A stretch of DNA of 64,000 nucleotides from Obrimoposthia wandeli (taxonomy: Eukaryota): assembly GCA_977020255.1 (NCBI GenBank), contig CDROCS010000410.1, forward strand, positions 372,001-436,000, written 5' to 3'. Each line of letters starts with the position of its first letter. Position 1 is the first letter of the stretch. Of the stretch, positions 1 to 26,789 are shown one piece after another. Position numbers and translations under genes: made by a program. The notes beneath the pieces were generated by a model. It was given only the letters and a program-made list of their open reading frames with translations. It was not told where the DNA came from and did not search any database.

Positions 1-328
1 TCAAAAAATCTGACGGGCTTAATATTTGTCCTGCGACAAAATCATCCGCAGCCACGGTATTTTTTAATGTCGAGATTAAAAATGTGGCTTTATCAATAAA
101 ATCAACACGGGAACTAACATCCTGTTCATTTACCGTTTTCCAGGCAAATAACGAGGCACTATAAGGACGACCAATAGTGATATCCTGCGTGGTAACAAGT
201 ACTTCATAATTCTTAACCAGATCCTGTTTAGACGTGCTTTGCACTGGTGCTGATAAGCTGAAAAATAGCCAAATCAACCCAAGTAAAGACGTACAAACAG
301 ACAGATAAACTAAACGTTTTGCATGCAT
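1..328 (-). CDS. rcpC: Flp pilus assembly protein RcpC/CpaB, 5' part (runs off window start)
   Basis: Read by hand: ATG at 328 gives MHAKRLVYLSVCTSLLGLIWLFFSLSAPV...YEVLVTTQDITIG...VAADDFVAGQILSPSDFL, open to base 1. N-terminal TM segment then a SAF-like pattern; lies just downstream of flp. Not in the ORF track. Confidence 0.75.
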   Translation of the reverse strand, partial: MHAKRLVYLSVCTSLLGLIWLFFSLSAPVQSTSKQDLVKNYEVLVTTQDITIGRPYSASLFAWKTVNEQDVSSRVDFIDKATFLISTLKNTVAADDFVAGQILSPSDFL

Positions 329-383
329 AATTGTTACTTCTATTAATACGGCCGAAACCGTATTCTCTCTGAGTTAATGTTTA

Positions 384-563
384 TTATTTATCAGCTTTAA
401 CTGTATCCAGTTTCTCAATTACAGACTCATAGGTCTGCTCAATCGCATTCGAAAGCTTGCCGTCAGAACCAAAAAATTGCAGCATAATAAGTGACATAGC
501 AGCCGCTAAAATTGCATATTCAATTGCCGCAGCACCACGTTGTTTTTGTTTGTTGTTTTTCAT
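384..563 (-). CDS. flp: Flp/Fap type IVb pilin (59 aa)
   Basis: Read by hand: MKNNKQKQRG|AAAIEYAILAAAMSLIMLQFFGSDGKLSNAIEQTYESVIEKLDTVKADK*. Shows the prepilin G cleavage site, E+5/Y+6 Flp motif and hydrophobic helix. One residue under the 60-aa track cutoff. Confidence 0.92.
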   Translation of the reverse strand: MKNNKQKQRGAAAIEYAILAAAMSLIMLQFFGSDGKLSNAIEQTYESVIEKLDTVKADK

Positions 564-675
564 TTTTTATCTCTTTTATTTTTATGGTTAATCTTGCTGT
601 TATAATTAATCTTGTTTTTATGATTTCATTTGGCCGTTTCGTAATTACGAACTGCCAAATGAAAGTATCTATCTA

Positions 676-3600
676 TTATTCAGAAGCTGTTAAACGGTAG
701 GCATATTCCGATCTCCAACTTGGCACCACTTTATCAACATCAGATTTACCTTCAGTGCTCATGTTGTAACATTTCTGTCGACCAAATTGAGCAGTATCAG
801 CGCTCACATAACAAAGTGCAGAACCCGATTTTTCCATATTATTAAAACGGAACACGGTACTATCAACAGGACTTAAGCCCTGCAGTTCAGCCAAACTTGG
901 TACACGCCAATTAGTCTTGTTACACAAGCCTTCATTATTAATTCGTTCTACTTCAGCTAATACCGTATCAACTTCAGAACTTGAGTTACCATGATTTTTA
1001 ATTCGTATCGCAGTATCTGCAGTATCAAACAATTGCCATGTTTGTTTTGACTCAGGTTGATAAGCACATACAGCCGCATCAACATCTGTCGTCATACCTC
1101 CAGCACTATCCAGCAATTGATATGTCAATTTAATTTCACTTACTAAACGACTTAGTACGACTTTATCCTCATCACCCTGTTTTGATGCCGAGTTGCTCAT
1201 CGCTGAGTTATTTTTGGTTTTATAGTGGTAAATTTTTGCATTTTTATTAACATCGTCAGCAGTCCAGTACCAAAATAAGGTTCCGCCACCAGTATAATAA
1301 TCAATGTCATATTCAGGTTTAAGCGCAAGATGATTTAAGAAAACATCAACATCAATCGTCTTGCCACTATTAACCGAGGCTGTTTCCAATGTCTTTAACT
1401 GATTTTTTTTTGGTAATGACCAATCACTACGACCACAAAACTGTACGTTATTTATCAGTTCAATAAGACCACCAGCCCCCATCACACTTGCAATACCAGT
1501 ACCTGAAGCATCAAAGGCTAAATCATCAGCCCCTTTTGGCAGTCCATCTTTAAGTAACGTCCAAGTACGTTGGCGAACAGAATCACGATTATCCATCACA
1601 CAGCGCCAACCTTCTTCGTACGTTGTAGCGCTCGGTAAATTATCTCCATTAATGTCTAACTTGATAAAATAATTTCCGATAACAGCGTCTGTATCCGCGA
1701 TTTTATAACCTGCTGTTGACGCTTGTTTTAACCCAGTAACAGCATGTTCAATAAGGACATCTACATCTGCAATGCTAGGTAAGCTATTAAACATGATAAG
1801 TAGCTTATCAAGTGCCGAAATAAGCGCTGTATTCGTTGTGGTTGGTAATTCGTCACTTGCTGACGCCAAGGCTTGAATAAGGCTAATATTAGCGTTAATG
1901 AAATCACTGATTGCTGCTGTTGCAGCAAATAATGCTAAGCTCTTAGCGTGAATTTCAGCGCTATCTGTTGCTGCGATTAAGGCATCTTTGATGATATTTG
2001 CCGTGGTATTTTGATCCGTTAACTTAATTAGCGCAGTTAACGCGGGGGTCACCTTTAGTGCCGATTTGAATGAAGTGTGTAACGCCGTTAAATTAATAAA
2101 CGCCACTTTAATCGATGCGACATTGGTATTAACCGTTGTTTTAAGTGCATCATCAATACTGCTATCATTTTCGAGCATAGTTGAGTAAAGCACTAATAAA
2201 TCGATTTTATCCTGATATTCAGTTAATGCTAACGAGAGTAAATCAAACTCCGTTTTCGCTTTAGTCTCAACGGTTGTCACGTCAGACAATAATGGCGTCA
2301 AATGTTGACCCGCTAACGAGTCAATATTGTAGATAACTGTAATTAAATCAGTTGATGTTGTTTGCCAATGATTATTCTGCGATGACACTAGCGCTTTCAG
2401 TGCAGTATTCGTAGATGTAGCCTCTGTTAATATTTTCGTTGTATCAGGTAATGACCAGCTTAATATTACTTTCGCATTTTGATACGATTGAGTATTTTCT
2501 TGGCCTAATGTGATTTTTTTAAATGTTGTAATACCAGTGGCAACTTCTGAAGCCCAGTGCGCGTAATATCGTGAATTGCTAATTAAATAATCGTCGAAAG
2601 TATTTAATATATAACTTGAATCAATCTGAGTTTTCGCCTTCATGGCAGTCGTGTCTAACAGCTGCCAATTTGCTATATCACAAAACTTTGGTGTTAGCAG
2701 CGCAGTCACTGCTGCAGCTTGACTTGTAGAACCTGCATAACTCCAAAACTGCGGGCCTTCACCCTGTGCATCATATTCAATGTAACAACCCGTGTTAGAT
2801 GCTCTTACCCAATTGCCGTTGTATGTAAGAGCATTTGCTTGTTTCCAAGTAACCATTGGTACGATACGTGTTACATAAAAATCACTCGTTGCAGCTGTAG
2901 CATAAAGCGTCTGACCTGCAGGATTGACCTGATTCGCAATCGCGTTTTTCTTAACACGCACACCGACTTTATTTTTAACATAAGCTTTCGGACCAACATG
3001 TTGCGGTAGGCTCGTTACAGCCTGCCATGTTATGCCACCATCATTGGTTAATTCATAATGCTCAGGCTTATCATAATCAGTACCTGTATTTCTATTTGTC
3101 ACCCATGTCCAGCTAAAACCATTGGTTTTAACTTCATAAGGATAACCAGTGTTACCAATATTTTTGTTCACAATGACTGGCGCCGTCGGAGCAGCTATCA
3201 CAACTGGCGCCCCGGAAGTAAAGGCTTGTGTACTGATTAACGCAGTACCCGCTAACGTGCCAGTTGCAGCGTTAACTTTAACGCGCACTAGTACATGTCC
3301 AGTATCAATATTAACATCACCAACCAATAGCGGTTTGCTAGCAACAGTTGTCCAATCAACACCGCCAGTCAGTGAGTATTCATACTCGCTAACATCGTTA
3401 AAACCACTAACAAGAGCCCAATCAAAGGTATTCAAGCTGTCATTCTGAACTGGATTAGTAGGCGATTTAGGGCGTTTTATCGCTGAATCAGCGGTATAAA
3501 TAGATGTATTAACGAGTACGTCACTCGCAACTCGATTCTTGCTTGAGTCTGCCTTTACACGGATTTGAATATCGCCGACAGCATAAACACCATCGATAAC

Positions 3601-3870
3601 CAATTGATGAGGATTTCCATTCACTGCGGACCATGGCTGATTCGGTATTTTTATTTCATAAAATTGTTTATCACTAAAATTATGACTCCAAGACCAGCCA
3701 AACTGATCAAGGTCATCATTCACGATAGGTCCAATAGGAGCATCTGGTTTAACGATATTTTGCGTCGGATTTGTTGATTTTTGATCTGGGCTTGCTTCAT
3801 TACAACCCGTTAACAACGTACCTGTAACCACTGTCAACGCGAGCAGTGACTTGTTTACTCCTAACAACAT
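676..3870 (-). CDS. Large lipoprotein: 3 FnIII-like repeats, helical stalk, multiple Lcl/DUF1566-like domains
   Basis: Lipobox LLTG-C after MLLGVNK (start 3870, AAGGG upstream; track start 3939). C..D/W....N...(F/L)C...W.(L/V)P motifs: FCGRSDWSLP, LCNKTNWRVP, and a degenerate FCDIANWQLL. Confidence 0.8.
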   Translation of the reverse strand: MLLGVNKSLLALTVVTGTLLTGCNEASPDQKSTNPTQNIVKPDAPIGPIVNDDLDQFGWSWSHNFSDKQFYEIKIPNQPWSAVNGNPHQLVIDGVYAVGDIQIRVKADSSKNRVASDVLVNTSIYTADSAIKRPKSPTNPVQNDSLNTFDWALVSGFNDVSEYEYSLTGGVDWTTVASKPLLVGDVNIDTGHVLVRVKVNAATGTLAGTALISTQAFTSGAPVVIAAPTAPVIVNKNIGNTGYPYEVKTNGFSWTWVTNRNTGTDYDKPEHYELTNDGGITWQAVTSLPQHVGPKAYVKNKVGVRVKKNAIANQVNPAGQTLYATAATSDFYVTRIVPMVTWKQANALTYNGNWVRASNTGCYIEYDAQGEGPQFWSYAGSTSQAAAVTALLTPKFCDIANWQLLDTTAMKAKTQIDSSYILNTFDDYLISNSRYYAHWASEVATGITTFKKITLGQENTQSYQNAKVILSWSLPDTTKILTEATSTNTALKALVSSQNNHWQTTSTDLITVIYNIDSLAGQHLTPLLSDVTTVETKAKTEFDLLSLALTEYQDKIDLLVLYSTMLENDSSIDDALKTTVNTNVASIKVAFINLTALHTSFKSALKVTPALTALIKLTDQNTTANIIKDALIAATDSAEIHAKSLALFAATAAISDFINANISLIQALASASDELPTTTNTALISALDKLLIMFNSLPSIADVDVLIEHAVTGLKQASTAGYKIADTDAVIGNYFIKLDINGDNLPSATTYEEGWRCVMDNRDSVRQRTWTLLKDGLPKGADDLAFDASGTGIASVMGAGGLIELINNVQFCGRSDWSLPKKNQLKTLETASVNSGKTIDVDVFLNHLALKPEYDIDYYTGGGTLFWYWTADDVNKNAKIYHYKTKNNSAMSNSASKQGDEDKVVLSRLVSEIKLTYQLLDSAGGMTTDVDAAVCAYQPESKQTWQLFDTADTAIRIKNHGNSSSEVDTVLAEVERINNEGLCNKTNWRVPSLAELQGLSPVDSTVFRFNNMEKSGSALCYVSADTAQFGRQKCYNMSTEGKSDVDKVVPSWRSEYAYRLTASE

Positions 3871-4072
3871 TTTACCTATCCCTTTTATGTAATTATAAAT
3901 AACTTTATGAAAACTATAGTCAAACATAAATTTTCGCATATACTAACGGGAATGAGAGTGATTATCAATTGTATTTGATCATATATTTTACTAATCATCT
4001 TTATTTACATTAAAATGACTGGTTTCCAAACGGTACCCGGTATAAAACTTCAACCAACAAAGTGTTATCTAT

Positions 4073-6133
4073 ATGAATGGAAAATTTAAACTATCTAAAA
4101 TAGCGGTTATTCTAGCGGGGTGTAGTCTCGTAGTTAGCTGTGGCGGCGAAGAAAGCAGTACGACAAAATCGGATCTATATGACTACAGCAAGCAATCAAT
4201 CTGCGTAGACACAGATCGTAATTATGCTTGTGCAGCTGGTGAACAAAAAGTAGCAACGCTATGGAGTGTTGCTAGGGATAACACTGCGCCCTTTCTTATC
4301 GAGAGTGGGGGTTATGTACTTACTGCGCCAGCAAGTGCGAATGTAGTCAGTCCGTTTACGACATTGATTCAAAATGAAATTTTATTTAACCCACAATTTT
4401 CCGGTAGCGTTGCGCAAGTGCAAACACAAGCACAATCGTATTTACAGCAACTATTTGGGGATAAATATAATCTTGATTTTAATAGACTAAATACCGAACA
4501 CGGGCCAAAAGAAGCAACTAACTTGTTACTCGCCTCTTTTGAGTATGCGTTGTCATTGAAAGGGGATTCTAAAGCGCTGAAAATCTCTGCTGCTGTTGAT
4601 AAAATGGTGAGTACCAGTAATTTTGATATAACGGATACTTTACTGCAATCTGACTTAGATAATACCTATGTAAACTTAAATAAGCGCTATCTGATCCCTG
4701 GTTCTTATCCAATGCGCACGCTATCAAGTGGCAGTGCAATCACGATAAATGAAAATACCGGCATGCTACTTGCCCTTACCTATGACGATAAATTATTACA
4801 AATTGATACAACGACAGGATTAAGCAACACATTTACCCCGGCGACGACAACTCAAACAGCACCAATAATGAGTACATACGACGACCATGATGATGACGAC
4901 GACGACGACGATGATGATGATCACCATGGAGGTGACTGCGATGATGATTATGGGTCCCTTTTCGGGGATGACTGCAATGGTGGCGGTACTACCCAGCCAG
5001 CATCAAGAATTCTATCAGCCGCTCAAGGCGACCATAATAAAAATGCTTATTTGATTTATCAGCCGACGATTTATGGCGATAACAGCATGAGTTATACGTG
5101 CAATAGTACGGGTAACAATGGTATTTTCTTAACTGAACTAGGCAAGAACAGTCAAGCATCTCCTTTGTCTTCAGCACCAAAAATTAGTACTTATAGTCGT
5201 GCATCTGGCAGTACTAAACCCCCTGTCGTCGTGCCCGTATTACCTGTTTCATCTGCAAGTTGTAAAAACAACCATATCAGTGAGTTAGTCGTCTCTCTTA
5301 ACCACAATACTGTCGCAGCTGTATTTAGTAAGGGTTATAGACAAGGCGCTGAATTAAAACAACTATCTAGCAGTACTTTACAGCCCACAGGTAACAGTTA
5401 TGACCTATCTTCAGCGCAGGCAGAATTCATATTAAGCAAGCAACAAAAATCATTATTCGTGCGACAAGATGCTGGTACAGCTGCGGTTGTAATTAATGCT
5501 CAAACCTTGAATTTACAAAGTGAAATAATAAAAAATGACATAGATAAAGCCGCATTCGTCAATAATGATAAACAACTGATTGTCAGCGATAAATCGAATA
5601 CTCTAAACTGGATTAATATTGCGCAAGGTTCATCAATCGCAACATTAGCATTAGCTGAAAATGTCATTAAACTCACTTCCGATACGACGGGTAAATTGAG
5701 TGCAGCATTAACGAATGAAAATATATATCTAATTGATAATGAAACAAAATCAATTATCTATTCGCAAGCTTATAGCCAACGTAACGTGTACGGAATGAGC
5801 ATGCTCAGTAATCGTATTATCATTAGCCGTTCGGGCGCGATTGATTATATTCAATTTGATAATTTGACCGGTACGCCAATCAAGATGGCTAAGCAGATGC
5901 TATCTAAAGACTTACTCAAGAATTGGTCAAAAAAGTCTGGTGCCTCATTAACAAACATGACGCTTGCAGAGCTACTACGAGATATTGGCGAAGAAGATGT
6001 CATTAGCCAACAATTCAGTGATATTGACCTGCAATGGCGACCAGCAAGTGCCACCAATATTGAAGGCGTAAAAGAGGTTATTATAACGGGGAATTATCGC
6101 GGCCAACGCATTAGCGTATCTAAAATGCTATAA
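4073..6133 (+). CDS. Lipoprotein with poly-Asp/His tract and probable beta-propeller C-terminal half
   Basis: Lipobox LVVS-C; CVDTDRNYAC Cys pair; DDHD11HH tract; repeating short beta-strand pattern (e.g. YLIDNETKSII) in the C-terminal half. Confidence 0.7.
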   Translation: MNGKFKLSKIAVILAGCSLVVSCGGEESSTTKSDLYDYSKQSICVDTDRNYACAAGEQKVATLWSVARDNTAPFLIESGGYVLTAPASANVVSPFTTLIQNEILFNPQFSGSVAQVQTQAQSYLQQLFGDKYNLDFNRLNTEHGPKEATNLLLASFEYALSLKGDSKALKISAAVDKMVSTSNFDITDTLLQSDLDNTYVNLNKRYLIPGSYPMRTLSSGSAITINENTGMLLALTYDDKLLQIDTTTGLSNTFTPATTTQTAPIMSTYDDHDDDDDDDDDDDHHGGDCDDDYGSLFGDDCNGGGTTQPASRILSAAQGDHNKNAYLIYQPTIYGDNSMSYTCNSTGNNGIFLTELGKNSQASPLSSAPKISTYSRASGSTKPPVVVPVLPVSSASCKNNHISELVVSLNHNTVAAVFSKGYRQGAELKQLSSSTLQPTGNSYDLSSAQAEFILSKQQKSLFVRQDAGTAAVVINAQTLNLQSEIIKNDIDKAAFVNNDKQLIVSDKSNTLNWINIAQGSSIATLALAENVIKLTSDTTGKLSAALTNENIYLIDNETKSIIYSQAYSQRNVYGMSMLSNRIIISRSGAIDYIQFDNLTGTPIKMAKQMLSKDLLKNWSKKSGASLTNMTLAELLRDIGEEDVISQQFSDIDLQWRPASATNIEGVKEVIITGNYRGQRISVSKML

Positions 6134-6150: not shown

Positions 6151-6690
6151 TTAATTACTTGAATCCAGCACCAGTCCACTTAACATCACCGACAGGCGTT
6201 CAATTTTGATATTGGATAACTGTCGGTAATCAAAATACGGGCACACAACTAAACGGTTTTTGACATCAATTGCAAATTCATCGTCTATCCACACCAGATT
6301 AGCCTCTAGCTTACCCGATGAAAGTAACGCCTTTGCATAAGTACGTCCGCATATAATATGAATAGTCTGGGTATTGGCATTAAGTACTGGCGGGCTAAAC
6401 AACAAAGCTGTTGCACTACCCGTTTGCAGTAAATAACGATCACGGTACTGTTGCCAAGTCGGTGCTCGCTGTGCAAAGTCAAAATCGGTAGGGCTTAATG
6501 CATACAAGAGTTTGGCATAGACGTTAAATACTTTACGCCAGCCATTGCCACAGGCTTGACCGATAGCATTTACTTCACCACTGACGAGTGAATTAACGCT
6601 GCTTATATTTTGGTATTCCAACATATTCGGCGTATTTGCCAAATACACCGAAAATGTAAAGTTAGCACAACCAAGACCTTTGTTTTCCAT
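6151..6690 (-). CDS. Conserved hypothetical protein (DUF6942-like)
   Basis: CGNGWRKVFNVYAKL and CPYFDYRQLSN motifs recalled from a marine gammaproteobacterial family; ATG at 6690. Confidence 0.6.
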   Translation of the reverse strand: MENKGLGCANFTFSVYLANTPNMLEYQNISSVNSLVSGEVNAIGQACGNGWRKVFNVYAKLLYALSPTDFDFAQRAPTWQQYRDRYLLQTGSATALLFSPPVLNANTQTIHIICGRTYAKALLSSGKLEANLVWIDDEFAIDVKNRLVVCPYFDYRQLSNIKIERLSVMLSGLVLDSSN

Positions 6691-6773
6691 CAGCAAGTAC
6701 GCCTATATTTTATTACAAAGAGGCGTATTATACATCGCTATAAGTTCACTAACCAGTGACCCTACTCTGATGG

Positions 6774-7382
6774 TTATTTCAATAGACTGACTTTGATATC
6801 AGCTAATTCATTTATGAACGATTCGAAAACAGCATCCTTGGTATAGATAACATATAATTCACTGACAACTCTAGCCAAAGGTAAGTCCTCTAAGCTGTCC
6901 GTATAAAACCGTAACCAACTGAATTCCAAATCATTAATTTCCATGCAGTTAACCACTGCGACCTTTTTAGCTTCACCGAGAAGTTCTACATAATACCCAT
7001 CAGATAGATTAGAAAATAAAGCATAATCAAATTTATCAAGAAAGGGTAAGTATTTCCCATAGATTGCAGGCGCTGCTGACGCCATGATATTTATTCCTGG
7101 CTGAGCTAAATGCTTTAATACTTGTTTATTGATAAATAAGCATAAATATCTGGAAAAGATATATCCAGCGATGCTCCAGTATTTACTTTCCGATTGGATT
7201 ATTGTTAATCTTTTTTTAAATTCGAACCTACCTACAAGACCAGTACATCGATGATAATACAATCTTAAAATAGGTAGGAAAGTAAACAAATTAAAAGGTA
7301 ACAAAATAAGTGTAAATATCACCCAGTGTTTAAAAGAATTAACTCTGATTAAGGTTAAGTCGAGATCATAAATTGATACCAT
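6774..7382 (-). CDS. HAD-superfamily (IB-like) phosphatase
   Basis: Motif I YDLDLT at the N-terminus, motif II SAA, motif III K, motif IV YTDSLED; hydrophobic segment near the N-terminus. Confidence 0.8.
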   Translation of the reverse strand: MVSIYDLDLTLIRVNSFKHWVIFTLILLPFNLFTFLPILRLYYHRCTGLVGRFEFKKRLTIIQSESKYWSIAGYIFSRYLCLFINKQVLKHLAQPGINIMASAAPAIYGKYLPFLDKFDYALFSNLSDGYYVELLGEAKKVAVVNCMEINDLEFSWLRFYTDSLEDLPLARVVSELYVIYTKDAVFESFINELADIKVSLLK

Positions 7383-7958
7383 TTATCGTGCATCCAAAGC
7401 CCATGGACATCTTAATAGTATTTTGGAGTACAACGTAAAATCGGCGTTGTGAATAGGATTGGTAAAGGTTGTCGTTAATACCGCAGATTTCACATCACAG
7501 CTATCATTAATCTTTGAAATGAAATCAAACACGTCTAGCATCGTATTTCCACTATCGACAGCATCATCTACAATGAGCACTTTACAACCTGGTTTCTTTA
7601 AACAAGCTATATCACCAGAAATCAGTTTCACATCCGAAGCGCACCTTTTTACTTCGTTATTTTTAAACTTTCTCTCTTGATAATAAACTTCAATACTTCT
7701 TAATGAATTTAAGGAAAACAGGGGTAAGTATTTTAACAAATTAAGTATTTTCAATTTTTCTTTTTTCTTTGTGGCCGGTCTTTGTCTTTTTACAATTAAC
7801 TGATTAAAACTTGCGAATGAACTCTTAGCCTCAACGACATACTTACCGCCAGTAGCAACGCCAACAACGACGTCAGGGCGGAAATCCCGTAGTGCTAAAC
7901 TAGCTAAATTATCACACGTCTGTACAAAATCATCTCCGATTAATGTTAATACTTTCAT
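7383..7958 (-). CDS. Type I phosphoribosyltransferase family protein
   Basis: PRPP-binding loop VLIVDDAVDSGNT and VVGVATGG. Its stop codon directly abuts the HAD start. Confidence 0.85.
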   Translation of the reverse strand: MKVLTLIGDDFVQTCDNLASLALRDFRPDVVVGVATGGKYVVEAKSSFASFNQLIVKRQRPATKKKEKLKILNLLKYLPLFSLNSLRSIEVYYQERKFKNNEVKRCASDVKLISGDIACLKKPGCKVLIVDDAVDSGNTMLDVFDFISKINDSCDVKSAVLTTTFTNPIHNADFTLYSKILLRCPWALDAR

Positions 7959-8453: not shown

Positions 8454-10034
8454 ATGCAAACAACTCTCGACCAAGCGATGTTACAAATTGCACTCGATCT
8501 CAATTTAAACCTGCCGTCAGGGCATCATTACCAACGTTTAATGCAGTCGCTACAGTCTGTGTTACCTTGCGATGCCAGTGCCTTGTTTATTCTTGACGAT
8601 TCAGGTCTATTGTCTGCAGCTGCCGTAAATGGCTTGACTGATGAAGTATTGGGACAAAAATTTGATCCAATGCAGCACCCTCGCCTACGCGCTATTCTAG
8701 CCAGTCGCGAGCCCGTTCGATTCCCTGCGAGTTCGACCTTGCCTGACCCTTTTGATGGGTTATTAAAAGATGATCCGAACCGCTCTATTGATGTGCATGA
8801 TTGCATGGGTTGCAGCTTATATGTAGAAGACCATTTAGTCGGCCTTATTACCCTTGACGCTATGCAAGTCGGGGCTTTCAAGCGTATTGATGATATTACT
8901 GTAGCTACTTTTGCAGCATTAGCGGCGGCAACAATAAGAAACGTTAATCAAGTTGAAGCATTGCAAAAAAGCCACCAGCAACAACAGAACATGAATCAAG
9001 TACTGATCCAAGAAGCCCGTAATAAAGGCGGTGAATTGGTTGGTATTAGCCCTGAAATACAAACCCTGCGCAACAACATCAACATGGTGGCTTATTCCGA
9101 TTACGCCGTATTAATCAGTGGTGAAACCGGAACTGGCAAAGAGTTAGTTGCCCACGCGGTACATTCACAATCCTCACGCGCAACCAAGCCGATGATTTAC
9201 GTCAACTGCGCCGCTTTACCTGAAAGCCTTGCTGAGAGTGAATTGTTTGGTCATATCAAAGGCGCATTTACCGGCGCTACCAGTAACCGCGCAGGTAAAT
9301 TTGAATTAGCGGATGGCGGCACTATTTTCTTAGATGAAATCGGTGAGTTACCGCTGTTAATGCAAGCTAAACTACTGCGCGTGATCCAACAAGGCGAAGT
9401 ACAACGTGTTGGCGCAGATAAGAACTTAATGATCAATGTCCGCATTATCGCGGCAACTAACCGCGAGTTAACCGAAGAAGTAGCTGCGGGACGTTTTCGA
9501 AGTGATCTATACCATAGGTTAAATGTGTTTCCAATTAAGGTCCCACCACTACGCCATCGCCAAGGTGATATTGCGGTATTATCAGGGCACATACTCGACC
9601 GTGTACGCAGCCAGTTCAACGTGGCTAAATTGCAATTGCACCCACAAGCATTAACAGCACTTAATCATTACAGCTGGCCTGGTAACGTCCGTGAATTAGA
9701 ACATACTTTAATGCGTGCCGGACTCCGTGCAATTCAAGCACAGCAAAGCCTGATCTTACAGCAACACTTATCCGATGAAGTCAGCCACACTTACACCTAT
9801 GCAACAGAAAGCGACTCGAACACAGAGGCAGATGATTTACCAACGACATCATTTGAGCTACGTAGCGCAGTAGAAAGCTATCAAACCAAGCTGATTTCCC
9901 ATGCCCTGCAGCAATCTAACTTCGTGTGGGCGCAAGCGGCTGAGTTTTTACAGATGGATCGCGGTAATTTATACAAAATGGGTAAAAAACTCGGTATTGA
10001 GCCTAAAAAATTACGCGCTGCAGAGTTAGTTTAA
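8454..10034 (+). CDS. norR: NO-responsive sigma54 activator NorR (GAF-AAA-HTH)
   Basis: GAF with HPRL and VHDCMGC, Walker [15 protein letters not shown] loop, C-terminal Fis-type HTH. Confidence 0.92.
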
Positions 10035-25454: not shown

Positions 25455-26033
25455 TTAATCGTAGGCTTGCTGGCATATCTCATCACATGTTCTAACGAAA
25501 CGAACCGTTAACGTTTCGCTATTCGATAGGGTGTAAGATAGGCCATTTTGAAATTCAATTTGCCACGCCATCTCTGTATTATTATTACTTGGAGTACTAG
25601 ACCAAGACTTAGATACATCAGGAAATAGCGGATTATTTATGAAAACGGATTCATTTAAGCTAGGCTCTTCACAAGCCGTTTCAATAATACTATAAAGTTC
25701 TTTTATATTAGGTAATCGCCAGTCTGAATGATTACTACTTCCCATATTAAATACCTCGACTTCCGCTAATGCTTCCCACCAAGTAAAGTATCTAACACTC
25801 CCGCTATCACAACGAGAACCGACTAGTCCACTAACACATCTGTTCCACTCTAATCGAGTGGCTTTATCAAACACAGAACCGTCACTATTTTGAATGTAGC
25901 GTTCGGTCGGTGTCGAAGTCGCGGCATTATCATTACAGCGTTGCTCCAACCCTTTAACTGATATCGATGTCGTTAACAACAAGATTGAACTAACAAGATA
26001 AATTGTACGAGAAATTAAGTGGGTATTCATCAT
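25455..26033 (-). CDS. Secreted Lcl/DUF1566 domain protein
   Basis: Signal peptide; VFDKATRLEWNRC, DWRLPNIKELYSI, WSSTP, VRFVR. Confidence 0.88.
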   Translation of the reverse strand: MMNTHLISRTIYLVSSILLLTTSISVKGLEQRCNDNAATSTPTERYIQNSDGSVFDKATRLEWNRCVSGLVGSRCDSGSVRYFTWWEALAEVEVFNMGSSNHSDWRLPNIKELYSIIETACEEPSLNESVFINNPLFPDVSKSWSSTPSNNNTEMAWQIEFQNGLSYTLSNSETLTVRFVRTCDEICQQAYD

Positions 26034-26060: not shown

Positions 26061-26789
26061 TTAGTCCACGTTACTATTACGCACTAATCGAACAGCCCTC
26101 GGTATGCTAGTGAAGTTACCTTGAATAGTACCGAACAAGAAACTAACCATCCAAGCTGAACCTAAGTCGTCAATATCAATATCTGCAGTCCAATAATTAT
26201 TTTGGGTATAAGGGAAATATTCAGTTTCAATTGCAGGCTGATCGTACGCATAATTAACAATACTTTGTAGCTCTAACCGTGTTGGTAAGCGCCAATCATT
26301 GTAACCACACCAATTTAATTGATTCATAGCAAAAGTAAATTTCTCAGTGTCGCAGTTAGTGCTATCAACACAAATACCGCCATTATCAGCAACACCATGT
26401 TCCTTAAAGCTAACATCGAACGATTTAAACCAAGAATAACTATAATCTGCATCGTTAACACTAGCCTTACCAATTGCGGATTTAACTTCCCACATCAATT
26501 CAGTATGATTGTCTAACACGCAAGGCCACTCCGTGGCATCAGTGGTAACCGCAAAGCCTTGCGCTCCAATCTTTGTAAAATCTAATGATTGCTCTTGACG
26601 AATAGAATTATCATTTAGACTTAGTCCTGCAGGGTTTAAATTAAACCGTATAACATAATCGGACAAAGGGTCGCCTGTACCAGTACCTGTACCGGCACCT
26701 GGATAACTATTTCGCTCAACGCTACCACTGCTATCATCAAGGCAGCCAACGAGTAAAAAAAGATTTAAAAATACAATAAAATATTGCAT
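26061..26789 (-). CDS. Lcl/DUF1566 domain lipoprotein
   Basis: Lipobox LVG-C; CVLDNHTELMWEVK, CGYNDWRLPTRLELQSI, YWTA, VRLVR. Confidence 0.9.
   Translation of the reverse strand: MQYFIVFLNLFLLVGCLDDSSGSVERNSYPGAGTGTGTGDPLSDYVIRFNLNPAGLSLNDNSIRQEQSLDFTKIGAQGFAVTTDATEWPCVLDNHTELMWEVKSAIGKASVNDADYSYSWFKSFDVSFKEHGVADNGGICVDSTNCDTEKFTFAMNQLNWCGYNDWRLPTRLELQSIVNYAYDQPAIETEYFPYTQNNYWTADIDIDDLGSAWMVSFLFGTIQGNFTSIPRAVRLVRNSNVD

Follow-up and report, generated by a model that had tools for sequence, protein, structure and literature searches.

Two large unstudied lipoproteins, one lectin-like and one with a predicted beta-propeller and a poly-aspartate loop, travel with one lineage of Tad pilus loci and a flavin/thiol redox module in Moritella, Vibrio, Photobacterium and Shewanella

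Tad pili are major colonisation factors whose known parts list has been stable for two decades, and the closest known loci are of the Aggregatibacter type (flp-tadV-rcpCAB-tadZABCDEFG), among which are counted the three tad loci of V. vulnificus, where tad1 is induced by low iron and flp-1 rises about 131-fold on iron limitation (PMC6748444). A second described system, the DsbD-ApbE-DUF3570-DUF4266-thioredoxin flavinylation cluster, was linked to iron reduction by its authors (Meheust et al. 2021, PMC8238504). Among adhesins, Legionella pneumophila Lcl combines a collagen-like GXY-repeat stalk, forming a trimer, with a DUF1566 head and is itself a type II secretion substrate (PMC11162425), whereas among propeller proteins the lipoprotein BamB, YncE and the C-domain of the pilus-associated PilY1, which carries a calcium site in its propeller, offer the nearest points of comparison.

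We analysed a 64,000-nucleotide stretch of contig CDROCS010000410.1 (here C410; Obrimoposthia wandeli assembly GCA_977020255.1; hereafter the window, which begins at C410 position 372001). An earlier note had described two large lipoproteins arranged head to head directly in front of flp-rcpC, and this observation is confirmed: the two large ORFs lie at 4073..6133(+), encoding 686 aa, and at 676..3939(-). We found that the real start of the latter is most likely Met24 at 3870, giving 676..3870(-) and 1064 aa, as orthologues start there and an AGG-type ribosome site is present; the longer start at 3939 was rejected because relatives carry frame-breaking indels upstream of Met24. Both proteins carry lipoprotein signal peptides with Cys23 in the lipobox (LLTGC in the lectin-like protein; VVSC-GG in the propeller protein, where Cys23 is invariant in 18 homologues); Cys23 is invariant in alignments A1 and A2 and a lipobox is present in nearly all family members, although lipidation, membrane sorting and an outer-membrane location remain inferred.

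The lectin-like lipoprotein (LclBig) is the first gene of the flp-tad operon and is built, in order, of the signal peptide, three FN3-like domains (residues 41-335), an alpha/beta domain (336-475), a helical stalk (477-720) and two Lcl_C/DUF1566 lectin-like heads (725-915 and 918-1064), as judged from Pfam matches and an AlphaFold model (pLDDT 77), with Foldseek returning FN3 tandems. Pfam Lcl_C scores 46.5 bits for the whole protein against a cut-off of 34.9, the two copies scoring 32.3 and 27.5 bits on their own. The protein has eight conserved Cys, and its orthologues are 34-80% identical and always lie between the propeller gene and flp.

It is followed by flp (384..563(-)), a 59-aa prepilin with a G/AAAIEY processing motif (Pfam Flp_Fap, PF04964, E 3e-8, 33.8 bits against a cut-off of 32.2) that is 60-98% identical in all related loci, and by rcpC, of which the 5' part lies at 1..328(-) before the gene runs off the window start (a 290-aa ORF starting at 328; Pfam RcpC match at C410:371621-371986; 40-97% identical to RcpC in related loci). 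Between flp and rcpC, a hairpin with a 7-bp stem, a 6-nt loop and no U-tract (345..364(-)) was read directly from the sequence, and may be an attenuator or stabiliser that sets the pilin-to-machinery ratio; it was not called by the terminator scan, and the promoter and terminator scan was no better than shuffled sequence overall. Upstream of the window, below position 372001, the operon continues without a break through rcpA, cpaD, tadZABCDEFG, a TlpA-like thioredoxin with a WCVSC motif that starts 48 nt after tadG, DUF4266, DUF3570, ApbE and DsbD, with Pfam matches for every Tad gene and for the DUF4266, DUF3570, ApbE and DsbD genes.

The propeller lipoprotein (LipoB, 4073..6133(+)) comprises the signal peptide, an N-module with a Cys loop (C44..C53) and helices (to about residue 200), a predicted 7-blade beta-propeller (200-600) carrying a poly-Asp/His loop (262-312, net charge -18) and a small C-terminal alpha/beta domain (601-686). 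In the AlphaFold model, residues 200-600 match 7-blade WD40 propellers at Z 20-22. The poly-Asp loop is kept in nearly all tad-linked relatives down to under 30% identity, and the family is small (53 hits among 1.84 billion representatives). Neither Pfam nor NCBIfam gives a family for this protein (no Pfam match at E 0.01 for the whole protein or at E 1 for its parts), profile searches of both lipoproteins against PDB sequences found nothing, and Foldseek, VIA and Atlas searches returned only generic WD40/YVTN propellers and FN3 tandems, with no functional lead.

The two genes are separated by a 202-bp divergent promoter region (3871..4072), which in Moritella is more conserved than the flanking genes (alignment A4, 87% mean identity, with a nearly invariant block at 3893-3975); Rfam has no RNA family in this region, so a riboswitch is not supported. 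A cross-genus alignment (A5) revealed a footprint at 3948..3966, a Fur-box-like palindrome that overlaps a predicted -35/-10 pair for the LclBig-flp operon (promoter-like hexamers at 3968-3940(-)) and lies 107-125 nt before the propeller gene's ATG. It matches 14/19 of the classical 19-bp Fur consensus here and 15-17/19 in relatives, sits 96-141 nt upstream of the propeller gene in 23 of 26 loci, and is the single best match of the whole ~20-kb locus in 13. It is one of only two sites in the 64-kb window that match the 16-nt core with at most 3 mismatches, and the only one that matches on both strands; however, AT-rich genomes give such matches by chance (1.35 expected per window for the 16-mer), and the Fur assignment rests on resemblance to the consensus plus conservation.

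The earlier note interpreted the arrangement as a four-part Tad variant with dedicated outer-membrane accessory lipoproteins (lectin plus acidic propeller), and had named independent assortment of the lipoproteins and tad genes as the result that would refute it. We found the opposite, and that interpretation is supported, although the outer-membrane location and the accessory role are inferred only from lipoboxes and linkage. In about 25 mapped loci from Moritella, Photobacterium, Vibrio, Shewanella, a Pseudomonadales MAG and several further genomes and metagenome contigs, every full-length relative of the propeller lipoprotein with enough sequence around it sits divergently upstream of flp, down to 28% identity (a Lysobacterales MAG hit, L020, was too fragmented to use). 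In a sample of 401 Vibrionaceae species, the propeller lipoprotein, the lectin lipoprotein and the tad-linked DUF3570 occur in exactly the same 52 genomes, the two lipoprotein genes being adjacent and DUF3570 lying on the same contig as the propeller gene in 48, at a spacing of 14.0-17.8 kb; as genomes in the samples are related to each other, 52/52 counts far fewer independent events. DUF3570 lies just past tadG in M. dasanensis, four Photobacterium genomes and seven further genomes. Within the window's own assembly, 3 of 3 tad loci that have DUF3570 also have the propeller (the third copy, on contig C253, being placed only by coordinates), whereas none of the 4 tad loci without DUF3570 has it, one of those 4 being a second tad locus on the same contig. 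Moreover, one Moritella genome with no tad locus and no tad-type DUF3570 keeps only decayed, C-terminal halves of both genes. One 750-aa relative has neither tad nor DUF3570 nearby, and larger homologues of the propeller, with the N-module and propeller but no poly-Asp loop, are the first gene of TlpA-DUF4266-DUF3570 operons that lack tad. The system is larger than four parts: the DsbD/ApbE/DUF3570/DUF4266/TlpA redox module is equally linked, and the propeller's homologues tie it to that module as well as to the pilus.

We reasoned, with moderate confidence, that the window holds the head of a conserved island of about 21 kb (C410:357146-378133), in which one promoter region drives a 19-gene operon, from the lectin-like lipoprotein through the Tad genes to a putatively flavinylatable DUF3570, ApbE and DsbD, and, in the opposite direction, the propeller lipoprotein. 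Our data establish that the propeller gene, the Tad genes and the redox module travel together as one block across genera, with the lectin gene part of that block in most lineages but missing from a few distant ones; that the block is lost together; that the two lipoproteins evolve as fast as the minor pilins and much faster than the machine core (identity to the Vibrio group of 35% for the lectin and 29% for the propeller, against 63% for TadA, 60% for RcpA and 67% for DUF3570); and that a Fur-box-like palindrome sits in the shared promoter region in every genus examined. The function, by contrast, is inferred from sequence alone, including expression, iron response, Fur binding, localisation and metal binding. 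In this view, which is the likeliest reading, the block would be an iron-regulated adhesion island of pilus, lectin adhesin, cation-binding propeller and redox module: Fur would leave the site when iron is scarce, and the cell would build this Tad pilus and display the stalked lectin lipoprotein as a co-expressed adhesin, while the propeller lipoprotein, anchored in the outer membrane, would use its Asp/His loop to bind a metal cation (Ca2+, or Fe/Mn) and work with the DsbD-fed flavin/thiol module at the cell surface. The lectin gene would be a later insertion between the propeller gene and flp, the propeller-flp pairing being the older core. It should be noted that the propeller gene lies 14-18 kb from DUF3570 rather than beside it, that the N-module also occurs in other, unrelated-looking lipoproteins and so may be a generic anchor, and that the locus has no prepilin peptidase of its own.

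An alternative that we consider possible but unlikely is that the propeller lipoprotein belongs only to the redox module, as its outer-membrane partner or terminal acceptor, and has nothing to do with the pilus, leaving only the lectin lipoprotein pilus-related. The larger homologues that head tad-less TlpA-DUF4266-DUF3570 operons (hhalign probability 99.7%, E 2e-26 over 483 columns; three independent cases) and the 52/52 co-occurrence of propeller and DUF3570 favour this reading. However, in every tad-linked case the gene sits at the flp end, diverging from flp or from the lectin gene and never beside DUF3570, the poly-Asp loop is specific to the tad-linked branch, and most DUF3570 loci in the window's own assembly (10 of 13) have no such protein.

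More doubtful is the possibility that one or both lipoproteins are cargo, moved to the cell surface by the Tad machine through its RcpA secretin, much as type II secretion systems display the lipoproteins PulA or SslE encoded at the head of their own operons. The lectin protein is indeed a large lipoprotein encoded as the first gene of the machine's operon, Lcl is a type II substrate, and both proteins diverge fast, as exposed proteins do; yet no Tad system is known to export a lipoprotein, and what would be the older form of the island lacks the lectin gene. Finally, mere hitch-hiking of a generic adhesin, a generic iron-regulated lipoprotein, a pilus and a redox system that act independently would fit the patchy distribution of the block (13% of sampled Vibrionaceae species), its frequent location on chromosome 2 and its differing outer flanks between genera, but is the least likely reading given that order and orientation are kept down to 28% identity and across orders while the flanks change, that the promoter footprint is shared, that gene spacing is operon-tight and that one genome shows joint decay.

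A bolder extension, which we regard as unlikely on present evidence, is that the island is an iron-starvation organelle coupling attachment to extracytosolic electron transfer, in which the Tad pilus and stalked lectin would hold the cell on an iron-bearing surface or host while a DsbD-fed, flavin-carrying DUF3570 barrel, together with the poly-Asp propeller lipoprotein, would capture and reduce metal at the contact. If true, this would give the first physiological role for DUF3570 systems and the first Tad pilus wired to a redox relay.

Literature searches on tad with Lcl/DUF1566, with a propeller lipoprotein or with DsbD/ApbE found no description of this arrangement. The lineage is present in about one in eight sampled Vibrionaceae species, among them the shellfish-associated V. 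ostreicida, V. pectenicida and V. bivalvicida. It gives the orphan DUF3570/DUF4266 system a concrete cellular context, yields simple, testable predictions (iron response, piliation, adhesion and metal binding), and names two new candidate adhesion or surface proteins in cultivable marine bacteria.

Compared with described propeller proteins, LipoB shares a predicted 7-blade fold (E. coli YncE matches at Z 19.7, and one database record names a homologue 'YncE family'), but there is no sequence-level match to any solved structure or Pfam family, including the PilY1/PilC signature; the N-module and the poly-Asp insert are its own, it has no VWA domain, and it is predicted to be lipid-anchored. 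With Legionella Lcl, the lectin protein shares only the Lcl_C/DUF1566 C-type-lectin-like head at the end of a stalk, and it is not an Lcl orthologue: it is a predicted lipoprotein, its stalk is modelled as FN3 domains plus helices rather than collagen (no run of four or more GXY triplets), and it has two heads, which have conserved cysteines and are acidic (pI about 5) rather than basic. The tail of the operon consists of the same five families as the DsbD-ApbE-DUF3570-DUF4266-thioredoxin flavinylation clusters, although the main text of PMC8238504 contains neither 'pilus' nor 'Tad', no propeller lipoprotein partner was seen in the parts consulted, and in our Vibrionaceae sample DUF3570 was found only in the tad-linked form. 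Relative to Aggregatibacter-type loci, Flp, RcpC, RcpA, the CpaD/RcpB-like protein, TadZ, TadA, TadB, TadC, the TPR protein TadD, TadE, TadF and the VWA protein TadG are all present in the canonical order, but there is no tadV in the locus (no Peptidase_A24 gene lies between flp and rcpC, the nearest being at C410:632305 beside the second tad locus, although more distant relatives of the island do carry tadV), a giant lectin-like lipoprotein gene is inserted as the first gene, a divergent poly-Asp propeller lipoprotein gene is present, and a five-gene thiol/flavin module follows tadG.

To establish what lies at this locus, we first delineated the two large ORFs and the genes on either side of them. 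The window (G000:C410:372001-436000, i.e. contig C410 of assembly G000) lies on a 656-kb bacterial contig inside a 1.35-Gb, 6912-contig assembly that is not one organism and that holds many bacterial contigs, several of them multi-megabase, and also a second Moritella-like contig (C3952:137755-155983) that carries the same island, 97% identical over the flp region. Best protein matches are to Moritella, with M. dasanensis reaching 80–86% identity. The two large ORFs lie head to head: 4073-6133(+) encodes 686 aa, and 676-3939(-) is the other, although its real start is most likely Met24 at 3870, giving 1064 aa, as all orthologues begin there, an AGG-type ribosome site precedes it, and relatives carry frame-breaking indels further upstream. 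Both proteins begin with lipoprotein signal peptides whose Cys23 is invariant. Downstream of the 1064-aa gene, on the same strand, come flp (384-563; Flp_Fap E 3e-8), a short hairpin without a U-tract (345-364) that may set the pilin-to-machinery ratio, and rcpC (from 328). The 20 kb before the window hold the rest of the operon, all on the minus strand and tightly packed: rcpA, a CpaD-like gene, tadZ, tadA, tadB, tadC, tadD, tadE, tadF, tadG, a TlpA-like thioredoxin that starts 48 nt after tadG, a DUF4266 protein, DUF3570, ApbE and DsbD; the unit therefore spans about 21 kb. The observation set out in the earlier note, of two large lipoproteins encoded head to head directly in front of flp-rcpC, is thus confirmed.

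We next examined the architecture of the two proteins. The 1064-aa protein (here the lectin protein) is modelled at pLDDT 77, and the model comprises three FN3-like sandwiches (41-335; Foldseek finds titin and receptor FN3 tandems), an unassigned alpha/beta domain (336-475), a 240-residue helical stalk, and two C-terminal Lcl_C/DUF1566 domains that together score 46.5 bits against a cut-off of 34.9 (32.3 and 27.5 bits alone). Two small stand-alone Lcl_C/DUF1566 proteins, encoded in tandem at window 25455-26033(-) and 26061-26789(-), are the best Lcl_C matches in the whole assembly, and the domain is common in these marine bacteria. The 686-aa protein (here the propeller protein) has no Pfam or NCBIfam family, and its model is confident only from about residue 400; even so, residues 200-600 align to 7-blade WD40 propellers at Z 20–22, and to E. 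coli YncE at Z 19.7. A loop at 262-312 (net charge -18, Asp runs flanked by His and Cys) is inserted in the predicted propeller; the Asp run is invariant in 18 homologues, and it is kept in nearly all tad-linked relatives, even below 30% identity.

To assess whether this neighbourhood is conserved, the point on which the earlier note had staked its interpretation, we searched for relatives of the propeller protein. A word-based search found 22 relatives, in Moritella, Photobacterium and Shewanella, and an exhaustive profile search over 1.84 billion representatives found 53 hits, 17 of them below 1e-30, with named members including Vibrio ostreicida, V. pectenicida, V. bivalvicida, V. tetraodonis and a Pseudomonadales MAG. 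Every locus that we could map shows the propeller gene diverging from the flp operon: S. psychrophila, three Photobacterium species and a metagenome contig; ten species representatives; eleven further genomes, down to 28% identity; V. pectenicida; and the Pseudomonadales MAG, where the lectin protein has 2506 aa. In three distant cases the lectin gene is absent and the propeller gene diverges directly from flp-tadV-rcpC, and a third copy in the window's own assembly, on contig C253 and placed by coordinates only, does the same; we therefore infer that the propeller-flp pair is the older core and that the lectin gene is an insertion. The outer flanks, in contrast, differ by genus (DUF6942 in Moritella, MFS in Shewanella, MarR in Photobacterium). 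In Moritella, the DUF6942 gene (window 6151-6696(-)) directly follows the propeller gene in every locus (79–94% identical) but does so in no other genus, while neither a PRTase/HAD pair at window 6774-7958 nor a GAF-AAA-HTH_8 sigma-54 activator at window 8454-10034(+), 2.3 kb beyond the propeller gene, is conserved next to the island in other genera.

In a sample of 401 Vibrionaceae species, full-length propeller genes occur in 52, the lectin lipoprotein occurs in the same 52, always adjacent, and a DUF3570 of the tad-linked type occurs in the same 52 (on the same contig in 48, spaced 14.0–17.8 kb, in two size classes that match short and long lectin genes); none of the three was found in the other 349 genomes. 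In M. dasanensis, four Photobacterium genomes and seven further genomes, DUF3570 lies just beyond tadG. In the window's own assembly, the three tad loci with DUF3570 have the propeller, and the four without DUF3570 do not. One of those four is a second tad locus on the same contig (C410:631471-632595), which has no propeller, lectin or DUF3570 genes but carries the only nearby tadV, a TadV-type peptidase that may supply the prepilin peptidase that the island lacks. These genomes are related, and the counts therefore overstate the number of independent events; even so, the order and orientation persist while flanks and sequences diverge widely. One Moritella-like genome (G006) has lost the tad locus and the tad-type DUF3570, and retains only the C-terminal halves of both lipoprotein genes (locus L041:13905-16035): a 391-aa ORF that holds only the Lcl_C end of the lectin gene abuts a 324-aa ORF with only the C-terminal half of the propeller gene, with no tad genes nearby, a DEAD-box helicase following, and the DUF6942 gene still kept beside the remnant. 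Two further loci show irregular copies. One Vibrionaceae genome has a partial tandem duplicate next to the intact island (G651:C2:60057-64027), consisting of a propeller fragment with a stop codon plus a 919-aa lectin-like ORF, and in one Moritella MAG (locus L013, G083:C14:48530-50589) the propeller gene reads with four stop codons while the lectin and tad genes look intact, which could reflect a pseudogene or an assembly error. Against the Vibrio group, TadA, RcpA and DUF3570 keep 60–67% identity, whereas the lectin keeps 35% and the propeller 29%, similar to TadE/F/G, a pattern that is typical of exposed, ligand-facing parts.

We also found a second link, to the redox module. Proteins of about 1000 aa share the N-module and the propeller with the 686-aa family (hhalign probability 99.7%, E 2e-26 over 483 columns), but they lack the poly-Asp loop, and in three independent cases they are the first gene of TlpA-DUF4266-DUF3570 operons with no tad genes; the superfamily is therefore tied to the DUF3570 system in its own right. 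However, the first roughly 100 residues of the N-module also appear in long forms of the lectin protein and in other lipoproteins, and so that part may be a general anchor, and one 750-aa relative has neither neighbour. This N-terminal lipoprotein module (a Cys loop of the form CxDxNxNxxC, then an LSAPA..SPFTTL-like strand), which has no Pfam family, recurs at the start of many otherwise different 640–2500-aa lipoproteins (the N-termini of long lectin proteins at loci L004, L006, L008 and L053, and genomes G302, G127, G271, G179, G101, G226, G056, G175 and G091).

To explore how the two divergent units might be controlled, we aligned the sequence between them. In Moritella the 202-bp divergent region is more conserved than the genes around it, and across Moritella, Shewanella, Photobacterium, Vibrio and others, a single block survives, which resembles the classical Fur box, GATAATGATAATCATTATC. 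The match to this consensus is 14/19 at window 3948-3966 and 15–17/19 in relatives; the block sits 96–141 nt before the propeller gene's start in 23 of 26 loci, and it is the single best match in the whole ~20-kb locus in 13 of them. Apart from a one-strand match just after flp (373-388), it is the only place in the 64-kb window that matches the 16-nt core with at most 3 mismatches, and it does so on both strands. It overlaps predicted -35/-10 hexamers of the lectin-flp operon, and no Rfam family matches there.

The interpretation in the earlier note, that this is a Tad variant with dedicated outer-membrane accessory lipoproteins, is supported in that it survived the synteny and co-occurrence analyses, although the picture is wider than the four parts that had been proposed: a pilus, a stalked lectin lipoprotein, a poly-Asp propeller lipoprotein and a thiol/flavin relay, behind a shared promoter region with a Fur-like site. 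We take the lectin protein to be a co-expressed surface adhesin, and the propeller to be an outer-membrane, cation-binding partner that connects the pilus end of the island with its redox end; while the linkage of the genes is what our analysis demonstrates, these functions, including the location and the cation binding, are inferred. Of the alternatives, a role of the propeller in the redox module only is a possible though less likely reading. It is doubtful, but also conceivable, that the lipoproteins are cargo of the Tad secretin, as PulA and SslE are for type II systems. Mere hitch-hiking of the genes on a shared island is the least likely of the three.

Parts of this island can be compared with systems already described. 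V. vulnificus flp-1 rises about 131-fold under iron limitation (PMC6748444), which shows that iron control of a Vibrio tad locus is real, and which bears on the putative Fur-like site only by analogy, with no orthology of the two loci implied. The DsbD/ApbE/DUF3570/DUF4266 cluster is published as a flavinylated extracytosolic electron-transfer system of unknown role, with hints of iron reduction, in a paper whose main text mentions neither pili nor Tad (PMC8238504). Finally, the lectin protein has no collagen repeats, eight conserved cysteines and acidic heads, and it therefore shares a domain with Legionella Lcl (PMC11162425) but is not an Lcl orthologue.
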